Source: Basidiobolus meristosporus CBS 931.73 (lineage: Eukaryota > Fungi > Basidiobolomycota). Taken from it: 64,000 nucleotides of DNA. The notes under the pieces are model-generated. The model was not told the DNA's origin. It searched no databases and saw only the letters and a list, made by a program, of their open reading frames with translations. Positions 26,756 through 41,884 of this stretch are shown here, piece by piece (the first letter of the stretch is position 1; each line of letters begins with the position of its first letter). The stretch is taken from NCBI GenBank assembly GCA_002104905.1, contig MCFE01000016.1:1-64000 (forward strand), written 5' to 3'. The position numbers and the translations under genes were made by a program.

Positions 26756-27826
26756 ATGACTTTCCACGCTAAAAGGATCCTGCCACATATTCCTCACCAC
26801 TCGAATACGAAATACTACGGCACCCGCCTTCGCGTTCTTGATGTTGAATCCATCGAGCTGGCTCGTCAACTAACACTCTTTGACTCCTATTTGTTCAATC
26901 AAATCAAGTCCGTGGAGTGCATGCACGAAGCGTGGCGACGAACAGAATCGTGGATGGCGGTCAATATCAAAGAGGTGCTAAAGGTATTCCAGCAGGTTGG
27001 TCATTTTCATCCAGAAGCAATATCAGAGGTGCCATTGCTATTTTTGGAAACTAATGGGTTTTTCTTAGATCAAATATTGGGTGGCTTATACAATATTGAG
27101 CGAGAAGGATACAATCAAACGCACCCATACAGTAGAACATTTCATTAGCATGGCTTCGGTAAGCACGCTCGTTAGTAAGCTAAGTTCATATCAGGTCAAG
27201 CGGCTAAAAACCTCATCGTCGAAACTTTAGTACTGCTCTTCATGGAACAATTTTAATACTTGCATGGCAATACTCGAGGGCTTCAGTGTCGCCCCAGTTC
27301 CTTCACTGTGGCATACTTGGCAGGTATTGTAAACGGCCACCTTTAGCAAAATCCTGCCCCTAACCCACTTCTCTCGTAGTCGCTTGGTAGCAAGTATAAG
27401 TCTTGCTTGGAACATCTGCGAGCACTGATGAGCCCCTGTAGTGACTTTCAGTTGTACCGTGCCAATCTTGAGTCACTCTCCACTCCGTGTGTACCTTACC
27501 TACGTAGGCTGAATTTCCTTGACATTGATATCACCCACGCGATATACTCAGTTCCTTCTACAGACACGTACTTGAACGATTGTGAAACCAGTGCCATCAG
27601 CGTGGAACAACTAATCCTCGAAGTTGAGCGACATCAGGGAAATTACGACTTCTCAGTCAGCGCCGATTTACTGCAATCTATTATCCAAGGGCTGCACGAC
27701 CACGGGGCCTTGAGTGCTATCATCAAGATAGTAAAGCAGATGGAGGAAAAAAACGAAAGTCACACTAGTTTTCCCGACGAAGAATACCGATTTTCACTCC
27801 GGTTGATCCAGCATTCCCACATTTGA
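26756..27826 (+). CDS. Stand-alone RasGEF (CDC25-like) domain protein, ~269 aa, paralog A
   Basis: Exons 26756-26995, 27069-27158, 27231-27323, 27380-27503 and 27564-27826. Motifs ELARQLTLFDSYLFNQIKSVEC, IKYWVAYTIL, NNFNTCMAILEG, YRANLESLSTPCVPYL. Confidence 0.85.
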
Positions 27827-30787: not shown

Positions 30788-33700
30788 ATGGTACTTCCTC
30801 CTCTTGGACCACCGGGAAGAGACCGTAAATTATGGCTGATACACACGATTACCGCTTTGGCAACGGTCGGATCCCTTACTGCACAACAATCCTATGCTGC
30901 TACCCAGATCGACACGCCATCAAAGCCTTCTGTTAACGACATTTCCACACCATCCCCCAACCTTGCTGCTAATCAGGCCAGTGTTTCGAACTTTGGGGTC
31001 GCCCTAAATATCCAGTCCAAAAGCCAAGCAGTGAAAAAGGTGGGACGATCCGGGAAAACAATCGTCAAGAAGGTGTATAGGCCAGGTAAGATCATACGTA
31101 AAACGATACCCAGGCCTGATACGAAGAAAAAGCGCGTTGATGGGAAAACGGCCCCGAAACCCTCTCAGCAACCTAATGCAGTGGAGAAGCCTATTGAGGT
31201 CGAGAATCCCATAAACAAGAAAATCCTTTTACCTGGCAAAGATGCCCAGAAGGAGATTAAAGATTCCACCAAGGAAAAGAAAGTTGACGAGGGCAAAAAA
31301 CCTGAAGCCACACCTGAGAAGATTTCAAATGGGTCCAACGAATCTTCGCCAAAGCAGGTAGTTAGCACAGCCGATGCTACAGTGAAAAATACCAGCGACA
31401 CCATGTCGGCCAATGAAAAGAAGGAAAGCACACCCAACAATGCAACTGAGGGGAAAAAGGAAAGTGGGAAAGGGGACTTGACGAAAACCCCTCCTGAAGA
31501 AAACAAGGTTGTTAAACCCGACACGAATATTGCTGGCAATATGGAAGAGTACAACGGCGGTAAAAGGGACACGACGACAATCTTGAAACAGGAACCTTTG
31601 CTGGATAACAAAGAAGTTTTATTGAAGACGTATATCCCAGGGAAAACGCTTGTTACGAAAGTGCCAGTAGGGCCTACGTATGCTACTAAAAAGACTCTCA
31701 TTCCTGGACAAATTACATACAAAGACGTGGAGGTTCCGGGGAAGACGATAGTTCGGAAAGTCCCTTATGGCCCTACTTACAAGTCAAATCAAGTCGTCAT
31801 CCCCGGCAAGAAGCTGGTTCAGAGAGTCAAACTCCCTGGAGAGACACGGGTTCGGAAAATACTATTGGGACCGACTTATGGTAAAAAGAAGGTTTATGAG
31901 CAATCGAATGGAGAATCAGCCTCTGGGGTCGGCTACAAGCAAGTCAAGATACCTGGCGAAGTTAGAATAAAACGTGTCAAGTCTCAACCCTTATACGCAT
32001 ACGAGGACATGACGATCCCTGGTGAATCGAAGTACAAGGTAGTTCGGGTTCCAAACAAAACCTTGGTCTACAAAACTGCTACTCCTGCGGAATACACTAT
32101 CCAGAAAGTGCTCGTTCCCGGCAAAAAAGTCATTCAACCAAATCCGGGTAGTACCAAAGATGTAGTCATCAAAAAATATATCTCTGAAGAATATGGCTTC
32201 AAGTTTACCGAGACGCCTGGCAGTTATGTTATCAGAAGAAAACTTACTCCTGGTCAAAGCATCAAGAAAAAGGTTGTGCGCAGTCCTCAATACGGCTACA
32301 AAGTAGTTAGCGTGACTGGGGAGCCAGTGAAAGTCAAGGTACGTGTTCCTGGTGAGATTATTGCCACGAAGGTTCGAGTACCTGCCGAATATGGCTACAA
32401 GAAGGTCTACATCCCGGGAGTATCCACTATCAAAAGATTTAAAGTAGTAAGCGGCTCAAAGAAGATACCTTATCTCAAAAAGCCTGTATACAAATATGAA
32501 AAGCATCTGGTTCCTGGCGAAAAGTCTATTAGAAAGTTCCGCATACCTGGTCAGACTATCAGAAAAATCGTCAAGATTGAGCCGAAATATATTTACAAGA
32601 AAATACCAAGAAAAGTCAACTTTGTCACCAAGAAAATCAGAGTACCAGCCAAAACTTTCACAATCAAGGTGCCGACAAGAGAAGAGTACGGGTATACTAG
32701 GTACCTCTCCCCGAGTGGGTTCAGAATCGCGAAAACCCGTATCCCTGGAAAACGAATTGCCCAAATTACTCGTATCCCCGCAAGGTTTGGCTACAATATA
32801 ATCAAGCAACACGCACCGCCAAGATATAGAAAAATATATGTCCCTGGAAGAACGATAGTACAAAAAGTACGGATTCAAAGGGATGAAGTTACGGCTATAG
32901 ACCTTCCACCAGTCCAGGAGTATGTAGAGGAATACTTTGACAGTACAGATGGTATCTACAAACACAGACTCCAGCGTTGCTCTTGGGATATTCGTCAGAG
33001 CCAGTATGACTGCAAGATCAAAGAAAACTCTGTCGATGAGACATTAGAGTCAAGCCCAGATTTTGAAGAAGAAACGTATGTCCCACCTGCGCAAAGATAC
33101 ATTGAGGAATATGTTGATAGATATAGCGGTGAGACCAGTCGACATCTCAAAGAATGCATTTGGAGACCTGAGATCAAAAACACTGTTTGCACTACAAAGG
33201 ACCTAGAATTACCAGATACTTCAAGCCAAAGATATTTCGAGCCTGGAACCACGGTTACTAATATATATCTGCCCCCTGACCGCGTATACATCGACGAATA
33301 CTTGGACAAAGCAACCAATTCGATGGAAAGAAGACTACGAGTTTGCACGTGGGATATCAAAAGCACAAGCTACAAATGTAGTAGCAAGGATATGGACGAC
33401 AACAGCTTGGCGATTTCGCCTGGTACCAAGGAATCGACAGACGAAAATATGGGCTTGAAGGTTACTACAAAAGCCCAGGCTTGTACATCAACACTGGGTG
33501 GTGAATGTGAAATCAATCAAAAGGAGTTCGGAAACTTCAAGCCACTGTCTCTCAATGGACCAAACGATCCCGCGGATATTAAATTGTATAGCGGTTTGAC
33601 GTTACAAGACATCTACTGGCCAGAGATAGATCCAAACGCTCTTGTCGCAGATAGGGTCTTTATCTACGAGTTTGTGGATCAAGCCGTGATGCAAACGGAA

Positions 33701-34537
33701 AGACGGGTGGTTGTATGCAAGTACGATGCCTACTCGCAGTCATGGACGTATGCTAGCATTTCAGGTGAAATACTGTCCACACCTCTGAATATGGAAGAGA
33801 CCAGCGAGGACGATGGCACGATAGTTTTGGTGAATGGGAAAACGCAGGAAACGGTGTACATCCCTCCGAAAAAAGAGGGATACACCATTCAACCAGCCGA
33901 CAGAATATACATTCAAGAGTACTTTGATGAATCAGTTGGAATTAGTCATCGTCGATCAAAAATATGTATATATCTCACGCAGCTACAAAATTGGAAGTGC
34001 CAGGAGAAGACCGAAAAGATTGATAACGCTTTCACTGCTACCGTTCATCTTCCTCCCATTGAAGACAGAAGCATGGCAGGTATGGATGCTGGCTCCAATA
34101 GTTATGAAAACATCCTACAGCAAGAAGCTATAAGCACCAATCCAACCGACGCTGGGCAAAATCAATACGAAATATGTACACTAGATGCTGATGGTAAATG
34201 GAAATGTACCCCTAGCAAAGACCAATCAAAGAACCCTCTGGAATCCGCATCCATCGACCTGAGCTTTATGAATAACTTGATACTGCCGTATGAAGGTTCC
34301 ACTGAATACCAAAGGGAGTATCCTAGGGAAAATAACAACACCCTTGACAACATATTCAAGTACGATTCAAACAGCTTGGACAACGAAATTTCGATGATAA
34401 ACCAAATGGACGAGAACAGCATCGAGCCTCAGGGTTTAACTTCTCAAGTCGACGGTTTAGAAGGCTCTTTTGATGGACTTGCAGAGCTGTTGGATTTGGG
34501 AAATTCAAACATGTCAGATAACCTCCATAATCAATGA
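30788..34537 (+). CDS. Large intronless repeat protein (1249 aa), probably secreted or surface-exposed; family not recognised
   Basis: Single 3750-nt ORF. N-terminal hydrophobic segment LWLIHTITALATVGSLTA, a Lys/Glu/Ser/Thr low-complexity region, a Lys/Val/Pro-rich repeat array, five acidic ~43-aa modules, and an acidic Asn-rich tail. Confidence 0.9.
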   Translation: MVLPPLGPPGRDRKLWLIHTITALATVGSLTAQQSYAATQIDTPSKPSVNDISTPSPNLAANQASVSNFGVALNIQSKSQAVKKVGRSGKTIVKKVYRPGKIIRKTIPRPDTKKKRVDGKTAPKPSQQPNAVEKPIEVENPINKKILLPGKDAQKEIKDSTKEKKVDEGKKPEATPEKISNGSNESSPKQVVSTADATVKNTSDTMSANEKKESTPNNATEGKKESGKGDLTKTPPEENKVVKPDTNIAGNMEEYNGGKRDTTTILKQEPLLDNKEVLLKTYIPGKTLVTKVPVGPTYATKKTLIPGQITYKDVEVPGKTIVRKVPYGPTYKSNQVVIPGKKLVQRVKLPGETRVRKILLGPTYGKKKVYEQSNGESASGVGYKQVKIPGEVRIKRVKSQPLYAYEDMTIPGESKYKVVRVPNKTLVYKTATPAEYTIQKVLVPGKKVIQPNPGSTKDVVIKKYISEEYGFKFTETPGSYVIRRKLTPGQSIKKKVVRSPQYGYKVVSVTGEPVKVKVRVPGEIIATKVRVPAEYGYKKVYIPGVSTIKRFKVVSGSKKIPYLKKPVYKYEKHLVPGEKSIRKFRIPGQTIRKIVKIEPKYIYKKIPRKVNFVTKKIRVPAKTFTIKVPTREEYGYTRYLSPSGFRIAKTRIPGKRIAQITRIPARFGYNIIKQHAPPRYRKIYVPGRTIVQKVRIQRDEVTAIDLPPVQEYVEEYFDSTDGIYKHRLQRCSWDIRQSQYDCKIKENSVDETLESSPDFEEETYVPPAQRYIEEYVDRYSGETSRHLKECIWRPEIKNTVCTTKDLELPDTSSQRYFEPGTTVTNIYLPPDRVYIDEYLDKATNSMERRLRVCTWDIKSTSYKCSSKDMDDNSLAISPGTKESTDENMGLKVTTKAQACTSTLGGECEINQKEFGNFKPLSLNGPNDPADIKLYSGLTLQDIYWPEIDPNALVADRVFIYEFVDQAVMQTERRVVVCKYDAYSQSWTYASISGEILSTPLNMEETSEDDGTIVLVNGKTQETVYIPPKKEGYTIQPADRIYIQEYFDESVGISHRRSKICIYLTQLQNWKCQEKTEKIDNAFTATVHLPPIEDRSMAGMDAGSNSYENILQQEAISTNPTDAGQNQYEICTLDADGKWKCTPSKDQSKNPLESASIDLSFMNNLILPYEGSTEYQREYPRENNNTLDNIFKYDSNSLDNEISMINQMDENSIEPQGLTSQVDGLEGSFDGLAELLDLGNSNMSDNLHNQ

Positions 34538-36871
34538 GACGCTGGGCTTGACTATTTTGCATAGAATATCAGCTGGTACTCTGAGTATAATAACCATAGA
34601 TATATGTTTTATCAACAGGAATTTTTATTTATTGAATCAGCCATATGATAGCCAAACTGGATGCAACAGCTTTTTATTCAATTTATATCGATGCATTGAG
34701 AACTTTCGCTTTGGCGCTGCGACGTCAATAGTCGATGCATTAAGTGATTTGTTGAAAACAATAAATACATTAATTTTCAGCATGCACATTTCCATCAATA
34801 TTTCATCGCAAGCTTAAATCCATAAAGGCATGTTGCTAAGCCAACTCGTCCCCCCCTCCTACCATCCTGTTTATAGGCAAGGTGCTCACTTCCATCTAAA
34901 TTGCTGCCTGTCAACTACATGGTACAAGCTCCTTCCAGAATGAGGAAGTCCTGTCTTAGCAATATGGAATTCTCTCCTCACTCATTTCTACTGAAGACAT
35001 CTTCATGTCAGAGTTAGAAGATTTCTACATCTACTCGCAACTATACTAGAGTATCCAAGTTTGAATTATTTTCTCCGTTTATCCGTGCCAACTGGCAACT
35101 AAATTCGTGAGCTTAATAAACATACCTTCGAAATCATGGTAGGGGAGCACAAACAAAATTTCTGCATTCTGCATAATATTTAGCTTCCAGGAGATCGATT
35201 GCTTAGCCCTCAGACACTGTAAAGCTCCGGTAAAGTTATCAATACCATTGAGTGTGCACTTTCCATATCGGGTTTTCTCAAGATTTCCAACTGCACCGGC
35301 ATTATTATTATGCATATTATGATGTAAACTGAGTATTTTGTGGAGTGCATCTCTGTGCTATTATCACTTCAGTGAAGATGGATTGGCTTCCGAGACCATG
35401 GTTAATGTACTCAATGAGTGTGCAGTCAATCGGCTCAAATGCTTATGCGTTGGCGAGTATCTTTGCAAATGCCCCTTATATTTAAATGATGTTCACTTCG
35501 AACATGGCTTAGGCAAGGTCCAAAGCGTGTTTGAATCCCAGCAAATTTAATATTCTCACCGAATTCAAAATGTACATTCGGATATTCAGGTTTACTATGA
35601 TTGCAATAGTAAGCAACAAACGGTGGAAAATCCAAACTCGGGAGAGTTCGCCACTGCTGATGATTATGCCATACCCGGAACTTGGTATACAATCCTCACC
35701 AACTCGTGGAAGGGCATATGATGAGACTATGGCGTGGTGGGACAGGATGGTATTACAATAAACCAGACGTACCAATGGCTGGCCGTGCAGTGCTTCCATG
35801 GTATAAGCTTTTCGATCATTACCTCGTCATGTTTTTGATGATGATAACCCAGCTGTCGTACAATTGTCTAGATGAAGAAAAGCGACGATATTCAGGTATA
35901 TGAAAAATCCACAAGAATTCCGACCAAGTATTATATCATTATTGATTATCGAATAGTGCTCCTCGAAACCTTGGTTTCAGCCAATTAGTGTGTCTCGATC
36001 AGTCTTTGCTTGTACCGGTCACGCTCCCAAATGAATACTCATTCATACCATATATTGCGCTTAGTACTGTTGAATTCGTACTTATTAATGATTTCTTCGT
36101 TTAATATTCCACTATGCCTTCTTAGAACACGAAAAATCCAGCGTTCATATGTTTTGGGGTATCAAGATTTTGATCGTAAATCTGGTTAATTCCGCCAGTG
36201 TATGGGACCGTGTGATACACTGCCCCAAACATGTAGGGTAGAGAAGTGTGGCCTTGGAGTAATGTTACTGATGGCGGAAATGGTCGAAATCCGCTTTGTT
36301 CGCCCTCTTCGTGGAGTCATTGCATTATTATGCATCTTTTATCATAATATTTGACCTCGTGAGTTGGTCGTCAGGTTTCCGGCCCTTGTTGTCTAGAACT
36401 CAAGCTTCAAAGCCCTCGTTCGCACGTATACTGGAAGGCAAACAGGATATCTCAATGCCAGATTTATTCTTTCGTATGCCCCAAACCTCTGCGGCCCATA
36501 TCAGGTAGGACGTGATCACTTTGCTGCAATCTTCCTTCAGGTGACTACGTAACTCCCGATCAATTGAGGTTCTTGGAAAGTAATACTAATTACGGTGCTA
36601 CATAGGGACCATATATAGTTCATCATATATTTCCAATTTCCCTACAATGACCGGCGAAAGGCGTCCATGATTTAGTAGATTCAATTGATTTCCTAATGTG
36701 CGGCTACCAATTCAGTCCTGTGTAGCCTGATTGCATTTTTCTCAAGTATTCGCTATGGGTATAAATTCTGGTGCCAGCCTCACGCATACTTATTATTTCT
36801 TGTCATTCCTACCGGCAAGCTGGTGGTTATCTCACATCCTCAACTCCTTCACCCCGCTAACTCCACCGACA

Positions 36872-37841
36872 ATGCCCTCGCAAAAGATCGAAACCTACTT
36901 CAAGAGGAAGGGCAATTCCAACACTACCTCCAAATTGTTCAAGACCCGCGTGCTTGATATTGACGCTGCAGAGCTCGCCAAACAGCTGACCCTCCACGAC
37001 TCCTACTTGTTCAATCTGATCAAGCCTGTAGAATGTATGAATGGTGCATGGCATCATGAGGAGGATTGGATGGCTGTAAACATCAAGACAATGCTACGTA
37101 CTTCTGAGCGGGTTGGTTTACGAAATAGCATACTTCTGCTCCTGGAATGTAATTCTGACGCCATTCTTTTCATTTAGATCAAGTATTGGATCGCACGCAC
37201 GATCATCAGTGAGCGTGAGCCGTCCAAACGCGGTTTCCTTATCAGCTATTTTATCAATGTTGCAACCGTAAGTGCACCATTAAGAAGTTGGATATTTATT
37301 GGGAAGCAGGCAACTAACTCTGGTAATGTAGGAATGTATCAATTTGAGAAACTTCAATACCTGTATGGCTATCTTGGAAGGTCTTCGGATTCCACCAATC
37401 CCTATACTTCGCACTTCCTGGCAGCTGGTCGGCCAGAAGTCCAAGCAAATGTTTGAAGAATTAAAGGTGCTCATGACTCCGGCGGGTAACTTCCCTTACT
37501 ACCGTCGCAGATTGGCCAGTCTCAATGGAGACCCCTGTGTCCCGTATCTGAGTAAGCGATGATTTTTGATGATACCAACGAGCTCAAACTTATGCTTCTC
37601 TTTTACAGAACTGATCTTGGATGATTTCGAAGACCCCCAGACAAACCTTAATTTCCAAATGATGAGTGAAGTTGAGCGCTACCAGAGTAGTTACGCGTTA
37701 CCTTGCTTCCAGGATATACAATCTTTCATCCTGCTGGCCTTGGAGCACCACGGTGATGAAAATGAGTTTCGAAGGATCGCTCAAAACTTCACTCAGGAAT
37801 ACGAGTACACTGCGAGCCCAGTTAGTAGGAATTATTATTAA
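36872..37841 (+). CDS. Stand-alone RasGEF (CDC25-like) domain protein, ~260 aa, paralog B
   Basis: Exons 36872-37111, 37178-37267, 37332-37551 and 37609-37841. Motifs ELAKQLTLHDSYLFNLIKPVEC, IKYWIARTII, LRNFNTCMAILEGL, NFPYYRRRL..PCVPYL. Shares three intron positions with paralog A. Confidence 0.88.
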
Positions 37842-38297: not shown

Positions 38298-39410
38298 TTA
38301 AACGTCAACATCAAAATAAATATACAGGAGTTGGAGCAAAATGCACATAATAAGAGCCGCATAGTGGTGTAAGCCATGTGCTGGGGGGCTAACATTAGAG
38401 GACACCTCTATGGAAGGCTCTGCCTCCGGAGGTAAAGGGGTATACGCTACACGATTTAGTTGGGCTGTTGCTTTGAACACATCACCAACTTTATAAAAAT
38501 CAACTGCAATGAAGTTTGGAATTTGATTGCGCTCTTTTGTACATTGCTGAACGTGTAGATTCAATTGATTGCCGTTTGTATGTGAGGCAATGTTCAGAGC
38601 TGGAATAGATATGTTTCCTCGACCGATGTTGAGCTCCGTGAAGGCAAAATGATTTAGGACAAATATAGGACGTGGTTGATTCTTCGGACGGTCAATACTA
38701 CAGTTGAAATGAGAATTGGACGGGACGGAGTACGGGGATTCCCATGCGTAGGTGAACTCATGATGAATCCTAAAAACCCCATAATCAGTAAAGTGTATAA
38801 AGCAGGCTGTTTACGCAGCAACTTACCACGGGAACCGAGGATCCGTCTTATTGTCGATGAAGATTACTAGACGTTTATTGCTTTGGATCATTTGTCTAAG
38901 TGTTGGCCAGGGCATCTCTGGTGCTTGAGTGAGCGCATATTTGTGTAGATCATTTTGCATAAAAACAGTAGCTATCAAATCTACAGGAATCATTGAGAAA
39001 TTTTCTAGGAAAATGGTCAAGACCTCTCCAGGGTTATTGTATAGAAATGAGTTAATTTCTTGCAAAGTAGTGCTTAGTGTACCAGCATCAAGAAGTTTGC
39101 AGTCGGTATGGCACAATTTAATGGTTTTCGGGTCCTCTGGCGTCAGATGAAGGTCTAACATCAAGCCACGGATACCATCCTTCAGTTGCTTCGAAATACG
39201 ATTGTTTTGATTTCCAGCCAGGTTGGGAACAAGGGAATAAGAGTTGTGAGTTGTAGCATAAGTCACTTCGTTAAACCTGCGACTACATAGCTCAGAATAC
39301 CCATTGCAGGATTTCAGTAGATTCAAAGCAACATCACTGGAGTTCTTGCTGATGAAGTCGGTCAATCCTACACTAAAATGGGCTAGTAGTAAAAGGAATG
39401 AGGCGAACAT
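38298..39410 (-). CDS. Secreted or anchored PLC-like phosphodiesterase (PI-PLC X-domain-like)
   Basis: Signal peptide MFASFLLLLAHFSVG. CNGYSELCSRRFNEVTYATTHNSY, NQ..ISKQLKDGIRGLMLDLH, NPGEVLTIFLEN, LNHF, PNFIAVDFY. Intron 38826-38770. Hydrophobic C-terminus. Confidence 0.88.
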
Positions 39411-41120: not shown

Positions 41121-41884
41121 TTATTTATCAGCAAATGCCATGCTCCAAAATCTTTCCTCAAATTCAGCGATGGTTAGGAAAATTTCCTCGGCAGCTTGCA
41201 GAAGCGATTCAGATCCACCTGAAGCCGTGCTAAGGGAGACCCGATATTCAGATTCTAATGTCCTCTCGAGTTCAGTGACAAATTTCTTGAAGTCTTTGTT
41301 TCCCCAGCGTTCAGGAAATTCTTGATACTTGGGCTCGACCCTCGACAAAATCTTCGACCAGGCGGTATTATACGACGCCTCAATTGCCCATATGGAGAGT
41401 ATCTGAAGATAGTAGGGCAGTGTGGGGACTCGGTCGGTCATGAACCTTCCATACTCGGCGCAAATGACTTGCTTAGTCACTTCCTCTTTGTCGAAGCTCC
41501 CAAGCTTTCTTCCCCACCCTTTGGAAGGGGTCTTCATGCTCCTTTCTTCCAGCTTTCGATCAAACCAAGTCAACTCATCCTTCATGAAAGTGCAGGAGGT
41601 AAACAAGACATCCAAATGTCCGAGCGGAGCCACCCTGAGTAGATTTCCGAGCATTTTGGCGAAGTCGATTGCATATAAATAGTCTAAGTATGTTGCTTCG
41701 TTAGAATACAATCTTTCAGGTAAGCTGTAGTCAAAGTAACAATACCTTGTTGTAACCAAGCATTGAATTGCCTATCGGTAATGGTACCATCGGCGACGCC
41801 GTTAAGGAAGGGATGTTCGGTGGCAGCTTGCCACTGCTTCGAGTACTTGGAGAGAAGGTGGTCAACTAGAGAGAATTCGGCCAT
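41121..41884 (-). CDS. TenA/THI-4 family protein, TenA_E (Cys-less) subfamily; thiamine-pyrimidine salvage
   Basis: WQAATEHPFL..FNAWLQQ|DYLY, ELTWF, IWAIEASYNTAW, ERWGNKDF and EFEERFWSMA. One intron. Confidence 0.88.

Follow-up and report, generated by a model that had tools for sequence, protein, structure and literature searches.

In this study we characterise a tandem protein module encoded in a 64,000-nucleotide stretch of the genome of Basidiobolus meristosporus CBS 931.73 (contig MCFE01000016.1, positions 1 to 64,000 of the forward strand; henceforth 'the window'). An intronless gene at 30788..34537 on the forward strand encloses the whole array and specifies a 1249-amino-acid (aa) protein, P0001, whose C-terminal half carries five full copies of the module and one half copy. 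The module is a new domain family that is restricted to Basidiobolus and belongs to a familiar general type, the small disulfide-stapled extracellular repeat. We favour, with a fair measure of doubt, the view that P0001 is a probably secreted, Basidiobolus-specific string of beads, each bead being a three-stranded module.

The original prediction had listed five copies and a half copy within one protein, and each of the peptides that it quoted is indeed located in the frame of the open reading frame (ORF) 30788..34537 (+). The peptides lie at aa 706-742, 765-801, 828-864, 953-988, 1035-1071 and 1129-1140, that is, at nucleotides 32903-33013, 33080-33190, 33269-33379, 33644-33751, 33890-34000 and 34172-34207. 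When profile hidden Markov models (HMMs) were built from four copies at a time, the fifth copy was recovered with scores of 20.9-45.9 bits (E 1e-8 to 2e-16), and the top score among 200 shuffled P0001 sequences in this leave-one-out control was 4.7 bits. Iteration of the profile over P0001 and two proteins from Basidiobolus ranarum, P0002 and P0003, yielded a family HMM with a total of 27 copies: six in P0001 (five full, one half), 10 in P0002 and 11 in P0003. Against this 27-copy HMM the five full copies of P0001 score 52-64 bits.

The conserved core comprises 38 residues, somewhat fewer than the approximately 43 initially proposed, and has the consensus LPPDRVYIEEYxD-xxTG-xxxRRLKIC-xW-x6-W-x-C. 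A Leu-Pro-Pro-Asp-Arg lead is followed, in order, by Val-Tyr-Ile-Glu-Glu-Tyr-x-Asp, by x-x-Thr-Gly, by x-Ile-x-Arg-Arg-Leu-Lys-Ile-Cys-x-Trp-Asp, by a variable loop and by Trp-x-Cys-Thr. Conservation over the 27 copies is concentrated in Tyr7, Glu10, Tyr/Phe11, Asp13, Arg21-22 and the aromatic columns 28 and 35. A six-frame HMM scan of the rest of the window (approximately 60 kb) found no more copies. No repeat remains at the DNA level across the modules and, therefore, the duplications that produced the array are old.

The only relatives that we found are the two B. ranarum hypothetical proteins, P0002 (1540 aa) and P0003 (1129 aa, N-terminally cut), which are 37-48% identical to P0001. Modules of P0001 best match the B. 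ranarum modules of the same rank (51-78% identity) and resemble their own neighbours less (35-43%); taken together, copies inside one protein are only 30-43% identical to each other. Since the copies are orthologous by position across the two species, the array is older than the species split and the copies evolve individually; on this comparison they have been retained separately and not homogenised.

The modules, all on the forward strand, can be followed one by one in the three-protein alignment. Module 1 (aa 706-743, 32903..33016; C731-x10-C742; HMM score 57.0 bits) finds its nearest counterparts in module 1 of the two B. ranarum proteins (62% and 59%), and module 2 (aa 765-802, 33080..33193; C790-x10-C801; 52.5 bits) is nearest to B. 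ranarum module 2 (53%). Module 3 (aa 828-865, 33269..33382; C853-x10-C864; 64.2 bits) is the copy that we modelled singly. An approximately 230-residue block of the B. ranarum proteins, corresponding to modules 4, 5 and 6 and the first half of module 7, is missing from P0001 in the alignment. The second half of B. ranarum module 7 is represented in P0001 by the first of two relics additional to the half copy (aa 888-908, 33449..33511; C899-x7-C907). Next comes a conserved Cys-free spacer (aa 909-951, 33512..33640) with many invariant columns in the three proteins. The spacer is as strongly conserved as the modules themselves (Phe-Gly-x-Phe-Lys-Pro-Leu ... Leu-Tyr-Ser-Gly ... Tyr-Trp-Pro-Glu) and may be a separate short element.

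Module 4 of P0001 (aa 952-989, 33641..33754; 53.3 bits) carries Tyr instead of the second Cys, and its orthologue is module 8 of B. ranarum (78% and 61% identity), where the Cys-to-Tyr change is also present. Module 5 (aa 1035-1072, 33890..34003; C1060-x10-C1071; 56.6 bits) is orthologous to module 9 of B. ranarum (57% and 51% identity). Just upstream of it, at aa 1011-1024 (33818-33859, +), an extra short beta-hairpin is predicted with low confidence (residues 317-330 of the long model described below); its sequence is conserved in B. ranarum as x-Ile-x-Leu-x-Asn-x-x-x-Lys-Glu-x-Ile-His-Ile. The second relic is a decayed copy (aa 1088-1111, 34049..34120) that gives no HMM match and lines up with module 10 of B. 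ranarum; it retains the Leu-Pro-Pro ... Asp-Arg start but has lost the strands and both Cys. Finally, the half module (aa 1119-1141, 34142..34210; C1130-x9-C1140) matches the HMM over positions 20-38 only, at 13.4 bits. Here the stapled hairpin alone remains, aligning with P0003 module 11 at 50% identity.

Because P0001 holds three relics and lacks modules 4-6, we consider that copy number is not strictly held and is under weak constraint. The same losses, together with the fact that the module is carried by only three proteins of one genus, could be read as a sign that the array is a decaying, fast-evolving repeat tract devoid of any module-specific function, in which case the shared pattern would show only that three closely related genes have a recent ancestor in common. 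We consider this decidedly unlikely. Within one protein the copies have diverged to just 30-43% identity and yet the Cys, aromatic and charge columns are kept, while the orthologous copies, at 51-78% identity, are conserved as purifying selection on a fold would predict. Moreover, the 1249-codon frame stays open, and the fold is predicted with confidence.

The original prediction had further suggested that the module may define a new domain family, and our searches are in good agreement with this: there is no match in Pfam, NCBIfam or among PDB sequences, and no credible relative outside Basidiobolus. Whole P0001 has no match in Pfam or NCBIfam. Searching Pfam with each of the five copies at E values up to 10 gave one chance row only (DUF3135, E 0.14), and P0002 and P0003 gave nothing above the Pfam cut-off. 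The remote profile searches were built on five sequences only. On the evidence of these searches the module maps onto no known Pfam domain. Against 177,635 PDB sequences the five-copy profile returned one chance row, GST, with E 0.39 over 14 residues. In an exhaustive search of 1.84 billion representative proteins it returned P0001, P0002 and two rows that we rejected. P0004 (2529 aa) consists of approximately 50 His/Thr/Pro-rich units of 47 residues; its E value of 5e-16 is summed from 23 very weak stretches, none with the second Cys. It looks like a translated satellite, and illustrates how repeats inflate profile scores. P0005, a bacterial repeat protein, shares only an Ile-Asn-Glu-Tyr-Phe-Asp-x-x-x-Gly hairpin motif (14-19 residues), with an hhalign probability of 20% over 19 columns. 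A metagenome scan gave 123 pattern matches, of which none was confirmed; the ESM Atlas, queried with the C-terminal half and with a single module, gave no usable match; and no description of P0001 was found in the literature. Judged by sequence, the family is thus a lineage-specific orphan, confined to three proteins of a single genus, as opposed to a domain widespread in fungi.

A conserved C-x10-C spacing had been described for the module. This holds for four full copies of P0001 and fails for the copy at aa 952-989, with its Tyr for the second Cys, and for the half copy, in which the spacing is C-x9-C. Within the family the first Cys is invariant, occurring in all 27 copies, and 23 of them have the second. 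The Cys pair is retained as the length of the loop shifts, which fits a disulfide closing a hairpin, and in the predicted register described below the two Cys are direct cross-strand partners; the model is accordingly consistent with an intramodule disulfide Cys26-Cys37, as had been proposed. All cysteines of the mature chains of the three proteins occur in close pairs 7-10 residues apart, with one exception in each: Cys977 in P0001, Cys1166 in P0002 and Cys729 in P0003, where in all three cases Tyr replaces the partner. In a probably exported protein, a conserved odd cysteine such as Cys977 suggests an intermolecular link.

We modelled module 3 with AlphaFold using the five-copy alignment. 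The predicted local distance difference test (pLDDT) score was 86.2, and all five models (85-86) show the same three strands, at model residues 11-19, 24-35 and 40-45, arranged as a three-stranded antiparallel meander. A long model of aa 695-1145 (451 residues, three-sequence alignment) has a pLDDT of 45.9, with module 5 as its best-scoring part (approximately 59-73). All five copies look alike in this low-confidence long model, with a strand of approximately 9 residues, a turn of 4, a strand of approximately 12, a turn of 4 and a further strand. Both models thus speak for the beta-sheet module, with copies folding alike, that had been anticipated.

With four-residue turns, the register of the model sets Cys26 opposite Cys37 and aromatic column 28 opposite column 35. 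One face of the predicted sheet would carry Tyr7, Glu9, Tyr11, Arg22, Lys24, the disulfide, Trp28 and Trp35, and the other Val6, Ile8, a hydrophobic residue in column 12, Ile19, Leu23 and Ile25 around a Glu10-Arg21 pair. When pairs are counted over the 27 copies in this register, hairpin 1 has 36 of opposite charge versus one of like charge, and hairpin 2 has far more hydrophobic pairs than in any alternative. The predicted register is compatible with the pair counts, which do not amount to proof of it.

Searches with the single-module model gave no specific match. The best Foldseek E value was 1.1 (threshold E <= 0.001), and among 48,161 chains compared by VIA-align the best Z was 3.8 with none of at least 5, the rows being pieces of larger sheets (COMM domains, Pur-alpha, monellin). 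This outcome indicates neither fold novelty nor function, as a three-stranded meander is too small to discriminate.

The four conserved aromatic columns (Tyr7, Tyr11, Trp28 and Trp35) share one face in the predicted register. Such a face might bind chitin, chitosan or glucan of the fungal wall or substrate, making the module a small carbohydrate-binding module (CBM) of type-A character whose tandem copies would add avidity. Size, three-stranded sheet and disulfide do recall CBM1 or CBM5/12 as generally known, and the protein is probably secreted. We nevertheless hold this reading to be unlikely: no CBM family was matched by any of the five copies in Pfam at E values up to 10, no CBM structure appeared in the top Foldseek or VIA-align rows, and the aromatic face also carries Glu, Arg and Lys, which is unusual for a planar polysaccharide platform.

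P0001 consists of a basic half followed by an acidic half, just as originally described: aa 281-699 have a net charge of +72 (isoelectric point, pI, 10.4) and aa 700-1249 a net charge of -46 (pI 4.4). The same layout is conserved in P0002. The description of the module itself as acidic did not survive closer inspection. The cores are near neutral (-2 to +1) and internally charge-complementary: the first half of each is acidic (-2 to -5) and the second basic (+1 to +4). The negative charge of the C-terminal half resides mainly in the linkers (-2 to -7 each) and in the tail (-15). We also considered the module as a charge-inverted descendant of the basic 33-residue repeat of the N-terminal half, and rejected this: the hhalign probability is 0.1%, with no cross matches.

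From the opposite charges the original prediction had raised the possibility of charge-driven self-assembly. In such a scheme the acidic half would be drawn electrostatically to the cationic half, within one chain or between chains, and the chains would assemble or coacervate to form a coat, matrix or glue in which the modules would serve as folded knots. The size of the two net charges, the conservation of the two-part layout in P0002 and the conserved unpaired Cys, which could fix assemblies covalently, are all compatible with such an arrangement. However, with near-neutral cores and the negative charge in linkers and tail, the modules are not the acidic partner, and the basic units and the modules show neither a sequence relationship nor a matching count; we therefore regard charge-driven assembly as improbable. 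A still more speculative extension, to which we give only a very slim chance, is a two-part extracellular cement or adhesive, in which the Lys/Tyr/Pro-rich cationic half and the anionic module half would condense and then be fixed via the free Cys. Complex-coacervate glues offer an analogue for such condensation of the P0001 halves. If true, the product would be a material peculiar to the genus, serving for instance the Basidiobolus wall or the sticky capilliconidia.

Having weighed these alternatives, we return to the bead-string architecture. In this reading, the C-terminal half would consist of separate 38-residue modules strung on acidic, probably disordered linkers, each module folding independently as a three-stranded antiparallel meander. 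The acidic aromatic first strand (Arg-Val-Tyr-Ile-Glu-Glu-Tyr-x-Asp) would turn at x-x-Thr-Gly and pair with the basic second strand (x-Ile-x-Arg-Arg-Leu-Lys-Ile-Cys-x-Trp-Asp), and the second hairpin would be shut by the cross-strand Cys-Cys beside a Trp/Tyr-Trp/Tyr pair. Units built in this way would present a conserved aromatic and charged face, and could be the beads through which an extracellular protein (of the wall, a matrix or the surface) binds or cross-links multivalently; Cys977 may link covalently to a second chain or partner. This last step, in which the modules bind or cross-link multivalently and the lone Cys provides a covalent anchor, we place at a much lower probability than the architecture itself.

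Several observations weigh against this reading. Neither homology nor gene neighbourhood (RasGEF, PI-PLC-X, TENA/THI-4) supports a function, and three of the eight module positions in P0001 are relics, with modules 4-6 absent altogether. The good single-module model is founded on five paralogous copies, and the long model scores poorly. Both the geometry of the disulfide and the assignment of residues to two faces were deduced from the DSSP register, and in hairpin 1 an alternative register (S=34) slightly beats that of the model (S=31) in charge and hydrophobic pairs. Finally, a lone three-stranded sheet with strands of 9-12 residues is unlikely to be stable as a monomer. With one of its faces hydrophobic, such a sheet calls for a packing partner, probably another unit or a ligand.

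The remainder of the host gene is organised as follows. A probable signal peptide occupies aa 1-38 (30788..30901, +), with a hydrophobic core at aa 14-32 and Ser-Tyr-Ala ahead of the likely cut. This is the sole hydrophobic segment in P0001, a mild one (Kyte-Doolittle mean 1.4 in a 15-residue window), and it is kept in P0002. With a single hydrophobic segment, at the N terminus, the chain is probably exported, which fits the extracellular location suggested in the original prediction. A region rich in Lys, Pro, Thr and Ser (aa 41-280) precedes the cationic array (aa 281-699, 31628..32884, +), in which 33-residue (3 x 11) Pro-Gly/Tyr-Gly-Tyr-Lys repeats were recognised by autocorrelation peaks at lags 33 and 66 and by repeat HMM matches; the array has no cysteine. 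The module region (aa 700-1145) comes next, and the chain ends in an acidic, Cys-free C-terminal tail (aa 1146-1249, 34223..34534, +; net charge -15, pI 4.05). A C-terminal glycosylphosphatidylinositol signal is unlikely, because the last 20 residues are not hydrophobic (Kyte-Doolittle mean -0.55). The gene's only tandem repeat at the DNA level is a 7-bp microsatellite, AGGGGAA, present in 3.9 copies at 31449-31476 in Lys/Glu-rich coding sequence.

A 1249-aa protein identical to P0001 is present in the public protein collection. The window holds only 10 ORFs of at least 200 aa, and the genes adjoining that of P0001 (RasGEF, PI-PLC-X and TENA/THI-4) are broken into short exon-like pieces, which marks the DNA as eukaryotic; among them the P0001 gene stands out in having no intron. 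It is single-copy and lies outside any tandem gene array. RasGEF-domain exon pieces flank it at 26756-27826 (+) and 36731-37177 (+), with Pfam E values of 6e-8, 1e-3 and 1.5e-6; these may belong to two paralogous genes or reflect a local duplication. Exon-like ORFs at 38826-39410 (-) and 41124-41759 (-) match PI-PLC-X (E 2e-5) and TENA/THI-4 (E 5e-8), respectively, are of ordinary housekeeping type and show no connection to the repeat protein.

Basidiobolus, an early-diverging fungus, lives in the guts of animals and is an occasional cause of human infection; among fungi, orphan secreted repeat proteins are common. The present work adds a well-defined domain, modelled with confidence and devoid of detectable relatives, to the lineage-specific secreted proteins of this genus, and has no bearing on a long-standing open question. 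With 38 residues and one staple, the module is small enough for chemical synthesis, nuclear magnetic resonance and binding screens, and may therefore give a tractable entry to the roles of orphan proteins. For protein designers it may be of interest as a natural minimal sheet, in which an acidic strand is zipped to a basic strand next to a Cys/Trp-clamped hairpin.

Among known systems, the module is similar to the WW domain (PF00397) in being a free-standing three-stranded antiparallel meander of approximately 35-40 residues with conserved aromatics, often found in tandem. It differs in that it has no Pfam match and lacks the terminal Pro and the two Trp at a distance of 20-22 residues that mark WW domains, its aromatic columns 28 and 35 being just 7 apart. 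Its strands are far longer (9-12 residues), it has a putative disulfide and it is probably secreted, as opposed to the cytosolic WW domain; no WW structure was among the top Foldseek or VIA-align matches. CBM1 (PF00734) and CBM5/12 are likewise approximately 36-45 aa long and secreted, with a disulfide-stabilised three-stranded sheet, an aromatic face and a fungal context. CBM1, however, packs four Cys and two disulfides into approximately 36 aa, whereas the module has one Cys pair and a Glu/Arg ladder on its predicted sheet; it has no Pfam match to CBM1, and no CBM1 chain was among the fold matches listed. The thrombospondin type-1 repeat (TSR; PF00090) offers another extracellular three-stranded fold with layered Trp/Arg side chains, disulfides and tandem arrays. 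Yet a TSR has approximately 55-60 aa, three disulfides (six Cys) and a WxxW motif, while the module has two Cys, no WxxW and no Pfam match to it. The beta-sheet of the COMM domain (best rows 9q6a, 6bp6 and 8f2r) is also a long-stranded three-stranded meander, in this case stabilised by a second chain. Its Z scores of 3.4-3.8 are below the level that the tool quotes for chance arrangements and are accompanied by no sequence similarity, and COMM domains are intracellular, with a helix following the sheet.

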